From the sequence record MK054224.1: DNA of 16,044 nucleotides; one strand, written 5' to 3'. Below, piece after piece: positions 1 to 16,044 of the stretch. The notes under the pieces are model-generated. The model saw only the letters and a list, made by a program, of their open reading frames with translations. It was not told the origin of the DNA and made no database searches. A program made the position numbers and the translations under genes. Every line of letters begins with the position of its first letter. Position 1 is the first letter of the stretch.

Positions 1-49
1 ATGGGGGCCTGTCGAGCCCCTGACCCGGGTTCAAATCCCGGCCGCGGCG
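1..49 (+). tRNA. 3' part of tRNA-Asp(GUC), serving as the att core
   Basis: Anticodon stem GGGGC(4-8)/GCCCC(16-20), loop CTGTCGA with GTC at 11-13; T-stem CCGGG(25-29)/CCCGG(37-41), loop TTCAAAT; acceptor 3' strand CCGCGGC(42-48) plus discriminator G49. The 5' half is not in the window. Confidence 0.92.
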
Positions 50-226
50 TTGTGGGGGAATATCCCCCACTCCCCCTACTGCTATGTAAGTTTCTATTAT
101 CTTATCTAAAGGTGCAATGTAATAATGCCTTTGCTTACCGCCATCATCCTTCTCTATTAAGTAAACATAATACTTACCTTTAATCTCTTTTACATAGAAT
201 TTAGAATTAACGTAAAAGGAAGGCAT
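1..226 (-). CDS. int: Integrase N-terminal fragment, int(N), running through att
   Basis: Manual translation from ATG at 226: MPSFYVNSKFYVKEIKGKYYVYLIEKDDGGKQRHYYIAPLDKIIETYIAVGGVGDIPPQRRGRDLNPGQGLDRPP; SSV2-type integrase N-terminus; no stop before position 1. Not in the ORF track. Confidence 0.93.
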   Translation of the reverse strand, partial: MPSFYVNSKFYVKEIKGKYYVYLIEKDDGGKQRHYYIAPLDKIIETYIAVGGVGDIPPQRRGRDLNPGQGLDRPP

Positions 227-250
227 TCTAAGAATGTTAAGTAACGCGGG

Positions 251-258
251 TTTAAATA
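251..258 (-). promoter_or_regulatory. Putative TATA box of int (TATTTAAA on minus strand)
   Basis: TATA begins 32 nt upstream of the int ATG, typical leaderless Sulfolobales spacing. Confidence 0.55.
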
Positions 259-360
259 CTCATTCTAATAGAACGATCAGCGTGGAGTTGAAAGAAGACG
301 GCAAAGATTCCTCACTTTTGCGAAAAACTGAATATGTGATACTTAGCAACTGTGAGGCTT

Positions 361-746
361 TGGAAAATTTGTAATTGTATAACTGCTCACTAATTTATAC
401 AAGAGATACCCCTGTTTTGGGGGTATATCTAGAATAAATTAGTGAGGGTTGAGAAATTTTCATATTTTCCCGGCGGTCACTAATTTTTAGTAGCAACTGC
501 CAAAAAAAGAGGTGTAGTTTAAACTTTTGTAGACCGGGTTTAAAGTACACCTACTCCAGAAAAATTTGCTACTAAAAATTAGTGAGCACTTAGACAATTA
601 CAAATTTTCCAAGTGGTCACTGTTTTTTACTAGCAACTCTCAAAAAATGAGGTGTGTCTAGAATAAATTAGTGAGCGTTTAGAAAAATTATACATGTTTT
701 TGGGGTACACCTATGCCAGAAAAAATTTTTAGAACAAATTAGTGAG
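361..746. repeat. Iteron and inverted-repeat block, putative replication origin
   Basis: AAATTAGTGAG at 436-446, 576-586, 665-675, 736-746 (+) and 386-396 (-), one-mismatch copy 476-486 (-); exact 20-bp inverted repeat 477-496/566-585; 34/36 inverted repeat 361-396/576-611; exact 19-bp direct repeat 428-446/657-675. Repeats are directly seen, origin function is inferred. Confidence 0.75.
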
Positions 747-759
747 AGGTGGAACAAAT

Positions 760-1065
760 TCAAAAACTAAACTTCTTTTTAATCTTTAGTAGACTATCTA
801 AATGTTTTAGCTCCAATTCGCTGACCTGTAACACTTGACCGTCTTTAAGTCTCACAATGTAATAGACTTTACCCTTCTCATCTCTCTGCCATCCAATGAT
901 TTCGTAACTGTTGTCTGGTTCAATGTATCTAAAAATTGGAGGTTCTACAGTCCTATCAATATAAAGAAACACCAAACGTAAACATTCTTTAGCCTTTTCT
1001 ATCGTTTTCTCGTCAGCTACTAACCCGTCAAATTCTTTACAAGAATTCCACATACTCTTCACCAT
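760..1065 (-). CDS. Hypothetical protein (97-101 aa), last gene of leftward operon
   Basis: ORF overlaps the 3' end of the helicase-like gene; GGTGA SD favours the ATG at 1053. Confidence 0.75.
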   Translation of the reverse strand: MVKSMWNSCKEFDGLVADEKTIEKAKECLRLVFLYIDRTVEPPIFRYIEPDNSYEIIGWQRDEKGKVYYIVRLKDGQVLQVSELELKHLDSLLKIKKKFSF

Positions 1066-2638
1066 CTGTCATTTTATGGTTTACTAAGCCCCTTTCTTCG
1101 GCCCATTTTAGTACTTTTTCTGCAATCTCCTCACCGAGTATGCCATAAAATTCGCTGATCGTGAACTGCTTCCCCTTTAACTCTTTGTAAATTTCTGCCA
1201 TGTTACCCGCAAACGTCAAATCGCCGTTACCATCCCTCTCTTCTTTATAACCGTTCACGACAAGGTCTATGACCTTTTGCCCGAACTCGTTACGCCTCCA
1301 TTTATTCCTATTCGCTTTGTCCTTGTCAAGGTCTACCAGCCCTTTACGTGATAGGTTGTAGAGCCATGCCTTTGCTGTCTCTGTATCGACCTTGAGTCTC
1401 ATTGCTATAGTCTTCGTTTCTTCGAATTCGGTACTGGTAGCCTGTAACGCTTTCAGTTCGACACTCGTTAGCCCTACCGCTGATACTAGGAAGTACCTCA
1501 ATAGCTTTTGTGAGAAAAGTGAGTAAACTTCATCATCAACTACTTCTTTCCCTAACAACGATGCAAATATCTTCATAACTTTTAGGCCTTGGTCGTAAAC
1601 TCTAAACGCGTACTGGTTATACTCCGTAATGACGTCCTTGAACCTCATTGCGATTTCTTTCGGCAGTTTAACACTCCTCGGTGTATAGTACATCCATGCG
1701 ATAGCCAGGTATTTTGTCACGGGGTCATACTCAAACGCGTTATCACCCCTTTCCGCTATCTTCTCGTATATCTTTTCCACGTCTCCTCGTTCCAGGTCTA
1801 GGGCAACAGTCAGGAAACGACTCATTATCTGTGTCACTTGGTCATTGCTATAATCAATGTTTACCGCAGTAGAAACGACACTAGGCGGGTAATCTACTAT
1901 ACCGTAACTGCTTCCTAACTTATCATCTGTACTTTTTGCGGTTAAATTGGCCAGTCTACCTTCAGTCATCAGCATGCTTAACTCCTTTAACGCCTCGACG
2001 TCAATCGTTTCGACTATAAAGAGACAGCGGTTCTTCAGTAGTTTACCGTTCTCGTCGAAAGCCAGGTAGCTAAGTGCTTTTTTTGTTAAGTTTGAAACCC
2101 ACAGTACAGCTCCATATCCTTCTTTTAGACTAAACATATTGACGATACTCTTCACTGCTGAAGATTTTCCCGCTCCTGCACTCCCTAGCACAAGAACACC
2201 GATTTTAGGTAGACCTTCATAAAATGCCGATTTTATTGCTATCAACGTCAGTAGTTTTACCTCGTCGTCACCAACGTGCCATTTTTCAGATTGCCTTAAG
2301 AACCAACCGATAGGGTCTTTTCTTAATTCTTCCCACTGCTCCGGGAACTCTGTCATTACCCATTCCTGTAAAGGTTTCTCAACCGTATTTTCCGCTAACA
2401 CTTGCCTGACAAACTCGTTGAACTTCTCCTTTTCCCTTTTTATTGATGTACATTCGCTACTACGTTTAAACGTTCCTTCCGTTATAGGATATGTCACTTC
2501 TTTCCCGTCTTTGATATACCTGTAACTCGGTACAATGTATACTATGCCGTCGTCAATCGTTGCGTAAGTGTTTTCATCATCTATCTCTACTTCGATTTCA
2601 GCGTTTACACATTCACTATCATATGAATACCTCCTCAT
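1037..2638 (-). CDS. MCM-like AAA+ ATPase, putative replicative helicase with C-terminal winged-helix domains (533 aa)
   Basis: Walker A GSAGAGKS (2185-2162), Walker B-like LFIVE, sensor-1-like VVSTAVN, Arg finger IMSRF, sensor-2-like FRVY; C-terminal wHTH-like segments (TIAMRLKVDTETAKAWLYNLSRKGLV; AEKVLKWAEERGLV). Confidence 0.75.
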   Translation of the reverse strand: MRRYSYDSECVNAEIEVEIDDENTYATIDDGIVYIVPSYRYIKDGKEVTYPITEGTFKRSSECTSIKREKEKFNEFVRQVLAENTVEKPLQEWVMTEFPEQWEELRKDPIGWFLRQSEKWHVGDDEVKLLTLIAIKSAFYEGLPKIGVLVLGSAGAGKSSAVKSIVNMFSLKEGYGAVLWVSNLTKKALSYLAFDENGKLLKNRCLFIVETIDVEALKELSMLMTEGRLANLTAKSTDDKLGSSYGIVDYPPSVVSTAVNIDYSNDQVTQIMSRFLTVALDLERGDVEKIYEKIAERGDNAFEYDPVTKYLAIAWMYYTPRSVKLPKEIAMRFKDVITEYNQYAFRVYDQGLKVMKIFASLLGKEVVDDEVYSLFSQKLLRYFLVSAVGLTSVELKALQATSTEFEETKTIAMRLKVDTETAKAWLYNLSRKGLVDLDKDKANRNKWRRNEFGQKVIDLVVNGYKEERDGNGDLTFAGNMAEIYKELKGKQFTISEFYGILGEEIAEKVLKWAEERGLVNHKMTDGEEYVEFL

Positions 2639-3073
2639 TTATATCGCCCCGGCGTTCATTATGATAACGTCCTTTCTTAAGAATAATTCCTCGAAGCTAA
2701 GCCTAACGATTGGTTTAGACATGTCTGTTTCTCCTATAGTCCTATAATTCGTCAAATCGGAATATAGTACCTTTATTTTGTTAACGCATATTATGTCAGT
2801 GGTTTTCCCCGAATAAGAATTGTAAATCTTCAACTCATCGTTCTCTTTAATTAATTTGAATTCGTGATGATCGCAAACTTGCAATATTGCGTAAGCTTTA
2901 GGAGGTGAACCTCTCAGTGATACGAATATCGTAGAATAAAGGCCGTTATAGTCTTTCATAAACGCAATTATCATTTTCCTGATTTCGATATTTTCCTCAT
3001 AACACCTTAAATCATGTCCGCAGTAGGCTGAAGCCAATAAATGTTTAACGTAATCCCAACCGTTCTTAGTCAT
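2639..3073 (-). CDS. Hypothetical protein (144 aa)
   Basis: ATG at 3073 overlaps the upstream TGA (ATGA) with GAGGCG SD; its stop abuts the helicase-like ATG. Confidence 0.8.
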   Translation of the reverse strand: MTKNGWDYVKHLLASAYCGHDLRCYEENIEIRKMIIAFMKDYNGLYSTIFVSLRGSPPKAYAILQVCDHHEFKLIKENDELKIYNSYSGKTTDIICVNKIKVLYSDLTNYRTIGETDMSKPIVRLSFEELFLRKDVIIMNAGAI

Positions 3074-3489
3074 TTGCATCGCCTCAACTCGATAACCGGC
3101 TTTTCGAAAAGTATGCGTTCACAATTAGCTTTTTCAAAACTAAGACCTAGTTCCTCTAACCTCTTTTCTATTTCTTCAACATTTTCCTTTAACGTTAATC
3201 TCCTTTTACCTTCTATGTCACATAACGGGCAATTCGCATTAAAGCACCACTTAGCATCTGAACATGTTGCAGAAGTACCGTCGTCAAGAGCCGGTTGAAT
3301 GACAACATCGTTAACAATTAAAGGTGTTAAGGGGTCGTCGTTGATAAACGCTATACCTTTTCCGTAAGTACAATATCCTAAACTATACTTCCTATTTTCA
3401 AATCTCAGGACATTAACATACCATATTACTTTATGGTGGTATTTTTCTGGGTGTTCGAGTAAGTCCTTAATGTATTCTTTGACGTTCAT
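3070..3489 (-). CDS. Hypothetical Cys-rich, putative Zn-binding protein (139 aa)
   Basis: C-x5-C-x4-C-x2-C (CSDAKWCFNANCPLC); tight operon packing. Confidence 0.8.
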   Translation of the reverse strand: MNVKEYIKDLLEHPEKYHHKVIWYVNVLRFENRKYSLGYCTYGKGIAFINDDPLTPLIVNDVVIQPALDDGTSATCSDAKWCFNANCPLCDIEGKRRLTLKENVEEIEKRLEELGLSFEKANCERILFEKPVIELRRCK

Positions 3490-3492
3490 CGT

Positions 3493-4011
3493 TTACCCCT
3501 TTAGTTTCGGCTTAGCCTGTGTTACTTTTTTCGCTTCATTCTTTTCCTGTTCTACTCTTTCTTCCGTTTCCTCTTCCCTTTCTTCGTCTTCTGTTTCTTC
3601 ACCTAGCACTAGTATCTCGTCGTAGAACGTCTTGTTCTGCTTCTTACTCACTTTGATTTTTAGTTTGGTACCCTCGGTGATTTCTTTACTCTCCCATGCG
3701 TCGTATAACACCTCATATGCTTTAGACGTCAACTTCATTATAGCTTTGTCTCCTAGTTCACTCGCATCATACTTCTTTGGTTTTACAACTTCATCACCGT
3801 CTTCCGTCTTCGTAACGACTTTCTCCGTGACGCTCTCAAACTTTCCGCTTACCGGCTTTACGATAATACTGTAGTCTTCAATCTTCTTCACTGTACCGTC
3901 TTTCAACGCTATTTCTCTCTCAACGGCCTTTGGTGATTGCAACACTTCTACGGTTACTTCGTCGAACGGCTTAACGATTGGTAACCTTTCCCTTTTCATT
4001 AATACTTTCAT
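3493..4011 (-). CDS. Probable SSV1 E178-like protein; possible OB-fold ssDNA-binding protein with acidic tail
   Basis: Beta-rich core followed by EETEDEEREEETEERVEQE tail; position next to F93-like and RHH genes as in SSV1. E178 similarity is from recall; SSB function is inference. Confidence 0.7.
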   Translation of the reverse strand: MKVLMKRERLPIVKPFDEVTVEVLQSPKAVEREIALKDGTVKKIEDYSIIVKPVSGKFESVTEKVVTKTEDGDEVVKPKKYDASELGDKAIMKLTSKAYEVLYDAWESKEITEGTKLKIKVSKKQNKTFYDEILVLGEETEDEEREEETEERVEQEKNEAKKVTQAKPKLKG

Positions 4012-4193
4012 GCGTTAACACCCTCCTTTAATACCTCTTGTCTCTTCTTGTCGATATACCCTCTGCTTAACGCTTCAATGATTAAGATCTCAATTGCATC
4101 TGTTAGAGTTAGCTTTTCTTGTTTAGCTAAAAAAACGAATTTTTCTTTAATTTCACGATCTAATTTTATTCCTACATACTCTCTCTCTTTCAT
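4008..4193 (-). CDS. Ribbon-helix-helix (CopG-like) regulator, 61 aa, possibly SSV1 E51-like
   Basis: YVGIKLDREIKEKFVFLAKQEKLTLTDAIEILIIEAL is an RHH pattern; ATG at 4193 lies 34 nt below a TATA box, so the track start at 4247 is probably too long. Confidence 0.8.
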   Translation of the reverse strand: MKEREYVGIKLDREIKEKFVFLAKQEKLTLTDAIEILIIEALSRGYIDKKRQEVLKEGVNA

Positions 4194-4205: not shown

Positions 4206-4245
4206 TTTAAACAACAAAAGTATAAAAGTTTTTTGGTGTTTAAAC
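4206..4245 (-). promoter_or_regulatory. Leftward early (T5-like) promoter: TATA flanked by inverted operator half-sites
   Basis: TTTTATA on minus strand (4227-4221) between ATTTAAACAACAAA (4205-4218) and TTTGGTGTTTAAAC (4232-4245); 37/40 identical to the inverted 4740-4779. Confidence 0.75.
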
Positions 4246-4254
4246 ATAATTAGG

Positions 4255-4692
4255 CTAAGATTTCAAGAACCTTTGTAAATATTTCAAGTCGTCTATAATC
4301 CTCTTTTTAGCCTCTTCATCAAGTATCCCCAATCTTGTAAATATTTCAACATATGGAATCAAGATTGTCTGTCCCGCTAACGCCATTGCTATAAGTATCT
4401 TGTTAGGGTCTGCCTCTTTTTTCATTCGTTTATAGGTCTCAATACCCGGTTTCAGCGATATCGCGAAAAGTTTACCCTTTTCCGTGAGATATATCTTTTT
4501 TTCCCCTTTCTCTTGTTTCTCTTCTATAAAGCCTTCCTGAATAAGAAATTTCTTAGCGTCATAAAAAGTGGCGGTGGACATGGGGAAATCCGCGTTTACT
4601 TTCTTATATAAATCATATGTGGCTATCCCTTCATTATCATATATGTAGACTAATACTATCGCTTCAGGGTAGAAGAAAGGAGTACTTTTCAT
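4255..4692 (-). CDS. SSV1 F93-like winged-helix (MarR/PadR-like) regulator with C-terminal extension (145 aa)
   Basis: MKSTPFFYPEAIVL...MSTATFYDAKKFLIQEG...YLTEKGK closely matches recalled SSV1 F93; TATTTAAA (4722-4715) lies 30 nt upstream of the ATG at 4692. Confidence 0.88.
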   Translation of the reverse strand: MKSTPFFYPEAIVLVYIYDNEGIATYDLYKKVNADFPMSTATFYDAKKFLIQEGFIEEKQEKGEKKIYLTEKGKLFAISLKPGIETYKRMKKEADPNKILIAMALAGQTILIPYVEIFTRLGILDEEAKKRIIDDLKYLQRFLKS

Positions 4693-4713
4693 ATATCGCA
4701 TATATAATTTATA

Positions 4714-4780
4714 GTTTAAATACCAAACGTTTTAGTGTTGTTTAAATACCAAAAAGTTTTTATACTTTTGTTGTTTAAAC
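4714..4780 (+). promoter_or_regulatory. Rightward early (T6-like) promoter with three operator copies
   Basis: GTTTAAATACCAAA at 4714-4727 and 4740-4753, inverted TTTGTTGTTTAAAC at 4767-4780, TTTTATA at 4758-4764. Confidence 0.75.
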
Positions 4781-4800
4781 AATAGATAGAGGGTCAAAAA

Positions 4801-11001: not shown

Positions 11002-11494
11002 GCTAATAGTCTACGTGTTAATTTTCGATATCTTTCTTTCGCTAATGGTAGGTGCTTACGGTGGAATCTCACCACCGTCAATACCACCGATACCTAGCTA
11101 TAGTTTCGATCAAGCTTTAGCATCATCAATCGTGTGGACTGTAGGATGGCCACCAATCACTTTATGGGGATCCGTGACACTTATTCCACCGTTTTCGATA
11201 TTGGGGGCCAATTTTCCGGGGCTAACTTTACCGGGTGTAACGATTCCGGGCGTAACACTGTTTAGTATATCGTTTTCATGGCTAGCACCCCTCTTCTACA
11301 TCTCTGGTTGGATAATCTGGATATTCCAAACGGTAGCATCAACAGTAGGATATTTGTTAAGTATTTTTACAAGTAGTGTAGCGTTACTATCGTCAGTACC
11401 GGTGGTAGGGCCATTCCTTACTGCGTTTATACTTATTGTTAATTTCATTCTCATTTGGGAACTGGTGAAACTGATAAGGGGTTACGGGCCATGA
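10991..11494 (+). CDS. SSV1 C166-like membrane protein (167 aa)
   Basis: GGTGG SD before the ATG at 10991; hydrophobic and Pro-rich; core gene order. Confidence 0.88.
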   Translation: MGTKLIVYVLIFDIFLSLMVGAYGGISPPSIPPIPSYSFDQALASSIVWTVGWPPITLWGSVTLIPPFSILGANFPGLTLPGVTIPGVTLFSISFSWLAPLFYISGWIIWIFQTVASTVGYLLSIFTSSVALLSSVPVVGPFLTAFILIVNFILIWELVKLIRGYGP

Positions 11495-13751: not shown

Positions 13752-14216
13752 ATGGCTAAGAAGACAGAAGTAGAACAATTACAGAAAGAGAATAATGAGT
13801 TAAAGAAAAAGTTAGCAGAGATAGAGAGTTTACTAAATAATAATAAGGAATTAGATGAGGATGAAAAGTTACAAGAGATAGAGAACCCCTACACGGTCAC
13901 GAATAGGGCAATAACCGAGTTAGTAGAACCTAAGGACACAATGTTTTACCTTTCGGGGTCTCAGATATCACTGATTTTGACGGCGTTTGAGTTTGCAAGA
14001 CTCCCTAGTTATTTCGGGGAAGAACCAGTTGTCGAGTTAGCGGAATTCGCTCACAAACTTAAGCACTACTTAGTTTCAAAGAGTGGAAGAGGAAGAAGGG
14101 ATATACTGAGGGTACTTAGGGTGTCATCAGGTCAATCTAGGGAAAACGTGAATAAGAGTTTGATTAGTAAAATATTAAAGGGGACTGATATGGATGCCAG
14201 AGAAGAAGAAGGTTAA
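13752..14216 (+). CDS. SSV1 A154-like protein (154 aa)
   Basis: Coiled-coil N-terminus; ENPYTVTN and HYLVSKSGRGRRDILRVLR motifs; immediately precedes the B251-like ATPase. Confidence 0.88.
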   Translation: MAKKTEVEQLQKENNELKKKLAEIESLLNNNKELDEDEKLQEIENPYTVTNRAITELVEPKDTMFYLSGSQISLILTAFEFARLPSYFGEEPVVELAEFAHKLKHYLVSKSGRGRRDILRVLRVSSGQSRENVNKSLISKILKGTDMDAREEEG

Positions 14217-14931
14217 ACATATTAATACAGGGCAGTTAGGGCAAATGATCATAAAAGAGATGCAGGATAACGGTTTTCAAAGCATAACAATATTCGGTAA
14301 GCAGGGTGCAGGGAAAACTACTTATGCATTAAAAGTAGGGGCAAGAATATTAATGTATTTATACCCAGAGCTTACTGAACATGACGCATGGTGGCAGGCA
14401 TATAATCTTATGGTCTTTTCTCTAGATGAGGCAATAGAAAAACTGACAAGTGTAGTAAACACACATGAACAGGGTAATATAAACTATAGGTTACCATTTT
14501 TGATAATTGATGACGCGAGCATTGACTTGATTAAATACGCATGGCATCAAGAACAAAATATCCAATTTGCTAAGTTATTTAACTTAGCTAGGACATGGTC
14601 TACGGCATTAATTTTCACCACTCCATGGATAGATGACCTTCAGAAATTCTTAAGAGAGAAAGCATGGATAGTAGTGCAAGTACAAAAATTCGGGAAATCT
14701 AAAGGAAACTATCCCCAGTCAATTGCATGGATATATAAGAGGACTATCAAATTGGTCAATGGGGAATTTAAGGGTAAATATGTAGAAAAATATTACGATA
14801 TCTTTAGGAGGGAAATGCCCAATGACCTTTATGAAGAATATATTAAAAGACGTGATAAGGTAATGGCGAAAATAGCGAGTGAGGTACTTGCTATACTTAG
14901 GGAAAAAGCCTCAAAAGTACCAAGTACATAA
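14194..14931 (+). CDS. SSV1 B251-like P-loop ATPase (245 aa)
   Basis: Walker A GKQGAGKT, Walker B FLIIDD; last gene before the converging integrase. Confidence 0.9.
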   Translation: MPEKKKVKHINTGQLGQMIIKEMQDNGFQSITIFGKQGAGKTTYALKVGARILMYLYPELTEHDAWWQAYNLMVFSLDEAIEKLTSVVNTHEQGNINYRLPFLIIDDASIDLIKYAWHQEQNIQFAKLFNLARTWSTALIFTTPWIDDLQKFLREKAWIVVQVQKFGKSKGNYPQSIAWIYKRTIKLVNGEFKGKYVEKYYDIFRREMPNDLYEEYIKRRDKVMAKIASEVLAILREKASKVPST

Positions 14932-15265: not shown

Positions 15266-16044
15266 TTTGGACAGCCATTCCGCGTACTTCTTATACTCTT
15301 TTTTCGCTAAAGCGTATAAGTCCAAATAATGTTTTGTTAGCACGTCACTAGGTGTTCGTCCTTCTATGAAATCTATGACTTGACTTGGTATTTCCAATTC
15401 CGCCATTTTTGTTGCCACGAATTTGCGAAAATATTTAGGCGGGACTAAGTTCAACCTCCTTATCGCACTGGTAATCTGTCCTTCAGTTATCTTTATTTTC
15501 CGTAGAGGCGTGATGTGGAATAGGTAGAAACTCTTCTTTTGCCCCCTGACCCAATTGAGGACGTAAATACTAAAGCCGTCCTCATTAATTTCGTTTTTCT
15601 CGTCATAATTGCTTAGGACTTTAAGCACTTCTCTTTCTCTTCCGCCCGACTCTAAAAGTAGTCTGTAAAACGTGTATAACGCGTAGTTATCCCTTACCGC
15701 GTTGAGGGTCTTCCAGACTTCTTCTAATGTCGGCACGCGTAAGTCCGGTTTCGTCTTTTTCGGTTTCAGGTCTTTAGGCGGGTCTTTGTTCAGCACGAGT
15801 TTGTAGAAATTCCTCCACGCTTTGATGCAATTATTCGATTCTTTTCTTCCTTGCTTAACGCACGAGATATATTTCTTTATTGTCTCTTCACTGATATTCT
15901 TACTACGTAAAGCAATTTCGAATTTGAGTAAATCACTTGCGGAAATTTCAGAGTTGTTAGAAAGCGTTAGATTAGAGTCAATTATTCTAACTCCTTTCAA
16001 TTCATCATAATTAGCATTGGGGGTCTTAGGGGGTGTCCCCCCTA
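15254..16044 (-). CDS. int: Integrase C-terminal catalytic fragment, int(C), tyrosine recombinase
   Basis: LLLESGGRERE (Arg), KYFRK, EGR and KHY (Tyr) motifs; frame stays open from 16042 (GGTPPKTPNANYDELKGV) and joins int(N) through the att. Confidence 0.95.
   Translation of the reverse strand, partial: GGTPPKTPNANYDELKGVRIIDSNLTLSNNSEISASDLLKFEIALRSKNISEETIKKYISCVKQGRKESNNCIKAWRNFYKLVLNKDPPKDLKPKKTKPDLRVPTLEEVWKTLNAVRDNYALYTFYRLLLESGGREREVLKVLSNYDEKNEINEDGFSIYVLNWVRGQKKSFYLFHITPLRKIKITEGQITSAIRRLNLVPPKYFRKFVATKMAELEIPSQVIDFIEGRTPSDVLTKHYLDLYALAKKEYKKYAEWLSKVPG

Follow-up and report, generated by a model that had tools for sequence, protein, structure and literature searches.

The question raised by this locus is whether a repeat-packed region of a fusellovirus genome serves as a discrete origin of replication for the putative helicase gene that lies beside it. 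The window, namely the whole stretch of 16,044 bp analyzed here, matches GenBank MK054224.1 without any difference; this record is the complete circular genome of Sulfolobus spindle-shaped virus (SSV) NL01B.C01.07, whose source was a Sulfolobus islandicus isolate from Nymph Lake, Yellowstone. Few archaeal plasmid or virus origins have been defined, and the statement of an original prediction for this DNA that fusellovirus origins are poorly defined agrees with the literature, in which no SSV origin has been mapped or functionally characterized (PMC6080066). The interpretation that we favor, with moderate confidence, is that the repeat array at 362..765 is the cis-acting replication origin of a portable MCM-like replication module; it is not the origin of fuselloviruses in general. 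Read along the minus strand, this module would consist of an early promoter (4206-4246), a ribbon-helix-helix (RHH) regulator, three small genes, a 533-amino-acid (533-aa) helicase, a 101-aa partner, and finally the array.

Architecture of the repeat array

The repeat region lies in a 533-bp interval bounded by the start of the integrase gene (226) and the stop codon of the 101-aa gene (760-1065, minus strand), and it is the most repeat-dense part of the genome. The whole array contains seven box units with their flanks, in the orientations -, +, -, +, -, +, +. The six exact copies of AAATTAGTGA(G/C) counted in the original prediction were all recovered, starting at 386 (-), 436 (+), 476 (-), 576 (+), 665 (+), and 736 (+), and no other exact copy exists in the 16,044 bp; with one mismatch allowed, the genome held 8 matches against 1.14 expected, and 8 were reached in 0 of 200 shuffles. 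Boxes 1 (386..396, minus), 2 (436..446, plus), 4 (576..586, plus), 6 (665..675, plus), and 7 (736..746, plus) are exact copies reading AAATTAGTGAG, and box 3 (476..486, minus), also exact, reads AAATTAGTGAC. Box 5 (616..626, minus; AAAACAGTGAC) is degenerate: the decayed copy expected at this position is present as GTCACTGTTTT with two mismatches, and it lies exactly 40 bp from box 4, which is the family-wide dyad spacing.

The larger symmetries described earlier were likewise found. Palindrome P1 (362..470) has 51-nt arms around a 7-nt centre and carries the divergent pair of boxes 1 and 2 at a spacing of 50 bp; palindromes with 7-nt centres are also present in the metagenome contigs L017, L018, and L020. 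Palindrome P2 (477..585) is an inverted repeat with exact 20-bp arms (477-496/566-585) that enclose an inner near-palindrome (511-551); the arms of the latter (511-524/538-551, one mismatch) pair in the computed fold. The inverted repeat 361-396/576-611 matches at 34 of 36 positions and was extended by the repeat search to 63 nt at 79%, and the duplication with a 140-bp period was located at 429-515 and 569-655 (77% identical). When single-stranded folding was compared with shuffles, the palindromes at 355-478 and 470-592 each gave z = -7.8. In terms of box pairs, the window holds one perfect dyad, D1 (437..485), a 49-bp palindromic unit of AATTAGTGA, 31 nt, and TCACTAATT with an A/T-rich centre; one 49-bp dyad with a decayed right arm, D2 (577..625), which is part of the 140-bp duplication; the back-to-back pair in P1; and two single boxes.

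As had been predicted, no convincing open reading frame (ORF) occupies this region. The annotated GenBank coding sequence (CDS) AZG03663.1 (51 aa, 395-550, minus strand) lies wholly within the palindromes and was rejected as a gene, because its tblastn "relatives" occur several per locus, on both strands, and inside other repeat arrays, a pattern that marks it as repeat DNA; it is most likely a mis-annotation. The Rfam scan returned only the tRNA-like attP and sub-threshold hairpin-type microRNA matches, which in the array are due to the palindromes, and the array corresponds to no known structured RNA. A scan with bacterial promoter and terminator models, which are not applicable to archaeal promoters, gave a single hairpin at the centre of P1.

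Across the related elements, the repeats reduce to one unit of ~35 nt, whose core box is the 9-bp AATTAGTGA and whose consensus, derived from 193 unique box contexts, is T..CT.GTA.AAATTAGTGAG...T.AGAAAATTT.AAA. In the convergent arrangement, AATTAGTGA, 31 nt, and the inverted TCACTAATT form a dyad of 49 bp in total, and 50 of the 59 unique pairs have a start-to-start spacing of exactly 40 bp; among the back-to-back (divergent) pairs, the commonest spacing was 50 bp (20 unique pairs). Symmetry extends to the 31-nt spacer, in which positions 12-15 and 17-20 are 96-99% A/T around a central G/C, and the dyad centre is 66-99% A/T over ~15 positions against a background of 57% A/T, with no long A/T-rich tract. 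The converging box pairs around an A/T-rich centre, from which an origin had been suspected, were established by this spacing as a conserved unit. In SSVK1/SSV9 from Kamchatka, which encodes a 533-aa homologue at 84% identity, a homologous array with the core AATTAGGAGA lies downstream, and its units still align (ACACCTCT.TTTTTGGCA...AATTAG).

The arrays contain 4-12 boxes spread over 250-900 bp, and the dyad number clearly varies between elements. The larger arrays occur in hot-spring metagenome contigs (L035/L095, L138, L140, L144, and L147), with 9-12 boxes and 4-5 perfect dyads over 750-900 bp. Runs of N were observed inside the arrays of the sister records MK054225 (L004, ~4149-4169) and MK054222 (L006, ~575-585); short-read assembly is therefore ambiguous there, and the dyad copy number may be wrong.

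As short-read assemblies of repeats can err, and as the sister records contain these N runs, the array might be suspected of being a chance or assembly artefact. We consider this extremely improbable and treat it as excluded, since the same architecture occurs independently in many data sets, which comprise separate GenBank genomes, metagenomes from JGI and ENA, and the complete chromosome of an Acidianus; the observed box count, moreover, was not reached in any of the 200 shuffles.

Linkage of the array to a gene pair and to a mobile module

A search of other SSVs and plasmids for co-occurrence of the boxes with the helicase gene bore out the predicted association: the array is tightly and specifically tied to this gene across many independent elements. 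For the forward test, 15 loci encoding a 533-aa homologue at 69-100% identity were used, 14 of which also have the 101-aa gene. All of the exact 9-mer boxes (58/58) were found within 1 kb downstream of the 101-aa gene (13.8 kb), and the other 136 kb contained none. Sister Yellowstone viruses are among these loci, and the module and array also occur together on metagenome contigs with pRN PlrA-like genes (L017, L020, and L077), on a contig with conjugation-type ATPases (L018), and in an Acidianus manzaensis provirus (L021). Both the conserved geometry of the boxes and their exclusive tie to the gene pair were directly observed.

For the reverse test, metagenomes were scanned for the dyad alone and the neighbours were then checked, which gave 40 hot-spring loci with at least 3 boxes. 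The 101-aa gene, the 533-aa gene, or both adjoin the array in 29 of them, and the 3' end of the 101-aa gene always faces the array; 7 of the remaining 11 have a flank too short to judge. The scan of one genome per species yielded 51 single-dyad matches, all bacterial and none with several dyads, which represent the chance background, and no dyad in the Sulfolobales representative genomes. In the scan of viral contigs with a variable gap, 51 of 52 loci were chance matches and only L035 was real. A peptide-pattern scan of the one-genome-per-species contigs, with patterns that were too strict, found no relatives of the 533-aa protein.

Two metagenome loci deserve separate mention. In L074 (ENA k141_18362, 500-3100), which is integrated in a host contig, an integrase fragment and host genes come after an 81%-identical 556-aa homologue, and both the 101-aa gene and exact boxes are missing; the locus probably represents the end of a decaying provirus. 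The SSV-like L093 (JGI Ga0326758_104020, 2,047 bp) carries an integrase N-terminus, the 46-aa ORF, reversed VP1/VP3-like genes, a 5-box array, and a T6-type first gene; a variant with an origin alone, a satellite, and a chimeric assembly are all conceivable explanations.

The linkage data bear directly on the strongest rival explanation, in which the array is an operator or copy-control array, that is, a set of sites for a module-encoded factor (the RHH, the 101-aa, or an F93-like winged-helix protein). Through these sites, the factor would act on termination of the module operon, on the divergent small ORF, or on the integrase, or it would sense copy number. This rival is the strongest because the box is TATA-like in its 5' half (GTAAAAATTA), which makes a transcriptional role possible, and because some arrays lie beside RHH genes, as in three metagenome contigs with no 533-aa or 101-aa gene in view; in addition, fuselloviruses are rich in small DNA-binding regulators, their T5/T6 promoters carry direct repeats (PMC6080066), and the array and the 101-aa gene were inherited together as a block. 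We nevertheless consider an operator unlikely. The array stays after the last module gene irrespective of its neighbour on the far side, be it the integrase, T6 genes, a HicB-like gene, or conjugation ATPases, and the likely integrase promoter, with a TATA-like sequence at ~247-256 (consensus from PMC6080066), is outside the array. Moreover, 4-12 boxes over 250-900 bp with a fixed 40-bp dyad exceed a typical archaeal operator.

The RHH-associated arrays are a distinct observation in themselves. In L085 (2445-2644), L103 (496-1107), and L156 (455-812), arrays of the same dyad lie beside an RHH gene whose protein starts with MTANRGRTTIR.../MAPTDRVRLSVR...; these contigs are higher in GC (0.48-0.51 for two of them), and the array of L085 is near an SSV-type integrase. 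These features suggest a second kind of element using the same boxes.

In sister viruses of the MK054223 type, the module has the opposite orientation with respect to the integrase and T6 genes, and the array moves along with it and ends beside the T6 genes; therefore, the array belongs to the module and not to the integrase. By synteny, the inversion junction falls in P1, between 298 and 428. The array and the 101-aa gene of the window match MK054223 (100% and 99.6%) and the 533-aa gene is of the MK054220 type, indicating a mosaic history. We also observed that the equivalent of 428-4017 is inverted in five sisters (MK054223, MK054225, MK054230, MK054234, and MK054235), that palindromic promoter copies (GTACAAAGTTTGTAC around a TATA box) stand at both ends of the inverted segment (11371-11420 and 15440-15500 in MK054223, L007), and that ~740 bp of unique sequence including a winged-helix gene is present at one junction.

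The inversion raises the explanation that the array is a recombination hot spot, whose palindromes promote module exchange or inversion between co-infecting elements, with box conservation reflecting recent common descent. The position of the junction at the centre of P1 (window type versus MK054223 type), the mosaic history of the array and 101-aa gene as opposed to the 533-aa gene, and the ambiguous assembly of the MK054225 and MK054222 arrays are in keeping with this idea, and inversion via repeats at the T5+ ends has been discussed previously (PMC6080066). It is, however, very improbable in our judgment. The box and the 40-bp spacing are kept across 533-aa proteins that are 69-86% identical, with differing spacer flanks, and selection on a binding geometry is therefore indicated. 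Furthermore, the true flanking repeats of the invertible segment are the promoter copies (4206-4246/4739-4779 in the window and the corresponding pair in L007), not the boxes.

The MCM-like protein and the origin interpretation

The 533-aa protein (1037..2638, minus strand) is predicted to be an MCM-like AAA+ ATPase with two C-terminal winged-helix domains, and it is the candidate replicative helicase or initiator of the module. It contains a classical Walker A motif, and profile searches gave weak matches to AAA/STAND and winged-helix families, with only DUF815 and nSTAND below the cut-off. The Walker A motif reads GSAGAGKS (residues 152-159), and IMSRFL at 271-276 includes an SRF arginine-finger-like motif, which sits at the MCM arginine-finger position; G152, G157, K158, Q270, and R274 are nearly invariant among 22 relatives. 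The family is small, with 34 clusters among 1.84 billion representatives, and in precomputed tables it constitutes its own Pfam family, PF27228.

The AlphaFold model built on the 22 relatives had a predicted local distance difference test score (pLDDT) of 81.5 and a predicted template-modeling score (pTM) of 0.73. Compared with the PDB by Foldseek, the model matched eukaryotic MCM2-7 subunits and archaeal MCM hexamers at the top of the list, followed by RuvB and BchI; the MCM matches had E values of 4.5e-9 to 1e-7, a probability of 1.0, and TM scores of ~0.4 over 430-550 aligned columns. Against viral models, it matched phage ring helicases and primase-helicases, and two winged-helix-like units follow the ATPase at its C-terminal side. 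Thus, in the predicted structure, the neighbouring gene looks like a replicative helicase, as originally proposed, and the fold of its product is MCM-like. A sequence search against the PDB returned nothing significant, and fold comparison alone was successful.

Among the 22 relatives, 5 matched the Pfam MCM P-loop domain weakly (best E = 1.7e-6) and 12 matched a TrmB-type winged helix. Because the Pfam MCM model does not recognize the 533-aa protein of the window, membership in the MCM family proper is not established, and a helicase is a reasonable reading of the model. The protein matched neither prim-pol (primase-polymerase) nor superfamily 3 (SF3) families, as an ORF904-type replication protein would, and inspection of its beta-rich N-terminal 60 residues revealed no obvious zinc-binding cysteine pattern. 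The RefSeq label "DNA helicase" in SSVK1, SSV7, and ASV1 refers to a different neighbouring gene of the B494 family (B494/A583/C559), which is absent from the window.

A replication role for this protein family has been suspected before: Makarova et al. (2014) proposed that ASV1 C674, a distant homologue, acts in viral replication initiation (PMC4158269). Among PLSDB plasmids, only pSSVi (5,740 bp) encodes a 533-aa homologue, which is by far its largest ORF, and in pXZ1, a relative of pSSVi, a large unrelated protein replaces the pRN RepA (PMC2926602).

The nature of this NTPase also bears on a partition or maintenance function, in which the array would be a centromere-like site bound by an adaptor such as the 101-aa protein, or else would determine multimer resolution or incompatibility. 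Direct and inverted repeats arrayed beside an NTPase operon are a description that fits partition loci as well, the module resides on low-copy-type backbones (conjugative-like contigs and proviruses), and the stable maintenance of pRN1 is influenced by a conserved downstream region (PMC4234260). The NTPase, however, is predicted to be MCM/AAA+-like with a classical Walker A and an SRF motif, no protein of the operon matched ParA-, ParM/actin-, or TubZ-type NTPases in Pfam, PHROGs, or NCBIfam, and a search of the operon for a ParB- or AspA-like protein was likewise negative. We therefore judge partition to be improbable.

Under the origin interpretation, a module protein would recognize the AATTAGTGA boxes, most likely through the winged helices of the 533-aa protein, with the 101-aa or RHH protein as alternatives. 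Inverted boxes 40 bp apart correspond to approximately four helical turns, and both would therefore face the same side of the DNA. The dyads, bracketing the near-invariant A/T-rich centre (WWWW-S-WWWW), could place two head-to-head helicase rings over easily melted DNA; P1 and P2 could extrude or aid melting at 75-80 C, and several dyads may provide redundancy and cooperativity. Box binding, loading, melting, and origin activity are all steps that we infer from this arrangement. A more specific version, which we regard as possible but doubtful, is that the 533-aa protein is a self-loading MCM-type helicase whose own winged helices read AATTAGTGA, so that each 49-bp dyad loads a head-to-head double ring. 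If true, this would represent an Orc1/Cdc6-independent MCM-class replicon moving as a cassette between Sulfolobales fuselloviruses and integrative and conjugative plasmids.

By analogy, an experimentally established precedent for the layout of the array is the pRN1 origin, which is better characterized than any other origin of a Sulfolobus plasmid. It is a ~100-bp stem-loop that starts 54 bp downstream from rep, and the first gene of the operon encodes an RHH repressor (Berkner et al. 2014, PMC4234260). That origin was proven by deletion, relocation, and mutation, and the authors' model involves helicase assembly at the stem-loop (PMC4234260). The two systems share a Sulfolobales host, a replication protein combining a ring-helicase-type ATPase with a winged helix, and large stem-loops (here 355-478 and 470-592) shortly downstream of the replication operon. 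They differ in that pRN1 uses prim-pol and an SF3 helicase, whereas the protein described here is MCM-like AAA+ with no primase domain detected; in that the single pRN1 stem-loop is conserved in structure and not in sequence, whereas here a 9-bp box recurs 4-12 times at fixed 40- and 50-bp spacings; and in that the pRN1 origin is proven experimentally, whereas the present array is a candidate from sequence. We propose that the array would work like the pRN origin and yet is not a member of that type.

In SV40 and papillomavirus, inverted short boxes flank an A/T-rich stretch on which the virus's own DNA-binding helicase (large T antigen and E1, respectively) assembles as a head-to-head double hexamer. 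The array resembles these origins in its inverted box pairs around an easily melted A/T-rich stretch, with box recognition by the 533-aa protein being presumed; it differs in that the viral proteins are SF3 helicases with another origin-binding domain, and the boxes, spacings, and hosts are unrelated. Archaeal chromosomal origins have origin recognition box (ORB) inverted repeats around an A/T-rich unwinding element beside an Orc1/Cdc6 gene. The likeness here consists of the inverted repeats, the A/T-rich centre, and the adjoining gene for an AAA+ plus winged-helix protein, whereas the best structural matches of the 533-aa protein are MCM and not Orc1/Cdc6, and the array resides on mobile elements.

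Within the fuselloviruses, the proposed SSV10 origin is the "Tori"/ORF A49 stem-loop (Goodman and Stedman 2018, PMC6080066). It occupies the same slot, which separates the start of the integrase gene from the end of the T5 operon, and likewise has inverted repeats, but the repeat is GTAGTAACGTAGTAT and SSV10 has no MCM-like gene; the SSV10 element is tied to the slot, whereas the array described here is tied to the module and leaves the slot on inversion. For SSV1, the predicted origin (Cannio 1998 and Frols 2007, as cited in PMC6080066) lies in the region of the T5/T6/Tind promoters, which is similarly a non-coding, repeat-bearing regulatory region proposed from sequence. The counterpart of this region in NL01B.C01.07 (~4700-4800), ~4 kb from the array, is without AATTAGTGA boxes.

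Several observations weigh against an origin at the array. No co-variation was visible between the winged-helix recognition region and the variant boxes of SSVK1 and L017 (TTTTTAGTGA). The GC content of the array region (0.33) is only modestly lower than that of the genome (0.36-0.45), and the extremes of GC and AT skew fall at switches of gene orientation and are therefore uninformative on the origin. The TATA-like half-box mentioned above might also serve transcription. B251, the DnaA-like ATPase that is the usual candidate initiator, is encoded by all SSVs (14194-14931 in NL01B.C01.07). Four metagenome loci (L085, L093, L103, and L156) have arrays with adequate flanks and no adjacent 533-aa or 101-aa gene, and no comparable array was found downstream of the distant homologues (25-38% identity) at SSV7, ASV1, Sulfolobales virus YNP1, and pSSVi, nor beside the homologues of MK054236 and MK054215. 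In the SSVK1/SSV9 record (L011, 6100-8043), the 533-aa homologue is frameshifted into A460 and C78 and the 101-aa homologue is in two frames, and this virus has been propagated in the laboratory (PMC4453537); the frameshifts are either errors of the 2004 sequence or signs of module decay.

To these points must be added the viruses that lack the module. MK054227, from the same spring and 98% identical over ~10.7 kb, has neither module nor boxes, and the same is true of SSV10 and of SSV-RH, which lacks the slot as well. The array is therefore an accessory, module-specific element and not a universal fusellovirus origin, and in this respect the wider expectation of an origin for fuselloviruses in general failed, since the element belongs to a mobile accessory module absent from these three viruses. 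In the same slot, MK054227 (L211, 324-548) has the different repeats TGCTGCATGCAGC (four copies) and CTCCTAAGGAG, and SSV10 (L009, 4380-4620) has its own inverted repeats, within which a Tn5 insertion at 4468 rendered the virus non-functional (PMC6080066, Table 3), a point in favor of the origin interpretation. Several SSV lineages have repeat arrays of their own in the slot upstream of the integrase, which points to module-specific cis elements as drivers of the known T5-region variability. The most economical view is that many SSVs have a cis element particular to their lineage in the integrase-proximal slot and that in the NL01B.C01.07 lineage this element is the origin of an imported MCM-like cassette, possibly beside a backbone origin elsewhere.

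Repeated initiator sites beside an initiator gene, the suspected replication role of the protein family, and the SSV10 slot as a proposed origin were already known. The box, the 49-bp dyad geometry, and their tie to the MCM-like/101-aa pair were not found in the literature searched, which did not include Redder et al. 2009, the likeliest prior description. A vague repeat-rich region has now been reduced to a 49-bp dyad consensus and three candidate binding proteins, and the sister viruses with the module, with the inverted module, and without it form a natural comparison set. If the array is an origin, the ~4-kb cassette would be a compact portable replicon for Sulfolobales vectors and a simple system for the placement of an MCM-like ring on DNA without Orc1/Cdc6.

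Other genes of the module and its surroundings

The 101-aa protein (760..1065, minus strand) is always encoded by the last gene before the array, which begins within 20 bp of its stop codon. It has 24 invariant columns in 9 homologues, and its AlphaFold model reached a pLDDT of 83; its fold was not recognized, as the comparison with the PDB gave no match below E = 0.1 and just faint chromo/Tudor-like barrels. The minus-strand operon runs from 4247 to 760 and ends with this gene. Upstream of the 533-aa gene, the operon includes three small genes (2639..4011, minus strand; 146, 139, and 172 aa), and homologues of the 139-aa, 172-aa, and ~142-aa genes occur in the same order in L075.

The first gene of the operon (4008..4193, minus strand) has a weak RHH_1 match, and RHH genes of 63-68 aa also open the module in L017, L018, L020, L075, and L077. 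It is preceded by a copy of a T6-type early promoter (4206..4246, minus strand), the inverted-repeat partner of which is at 4739-4779 (41 nt, 93% complementary). This inverted repeat flanks the separately transcribed F93-like gene (4255-4701), one arm being the T6 early promoter and the other preceding the RHH gene. Early expression of the module is therefore implied, and the operon probably has its own early promoter. Because the promoter copy overlaps the annotated N-terminus, the RHH start was probably annotated (at 4247) 54 nt too far upstream, within the promoter, and an ATG near 4193 would give a protein of 61 aa.

On the other side of the array, the SSV-type integrase gene, identified by homology to SSV integrases, is represented by its N-terminal part (1..226, minus strand) of the joined CDS AZG03697.1 (15254..16044 + 1..226). 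The record is linearized inside this gene at the tRNA-like attP core (1..49, plus strand), which corresponds to the 3' part of the Rfam tRNA model (32.3 bits). Divergent from the integrase is an annotated 46-aa ORF (234..374, plus strand) of uncertain coding status, which has weak tblastn relatives in L075, SSVK1, and SSV10 and a position matching that of the SSV10 "Tori" ORFs (Tori described in PMC6080066). Far from the array, the VP1- and VP3-like genes share a 68-nt direct repeat (72%; 11978-12045/12268-12335) in their C-terminal parts, similar to the repeats through which SSV1 is reported to lose VP3 (PMC6080066).

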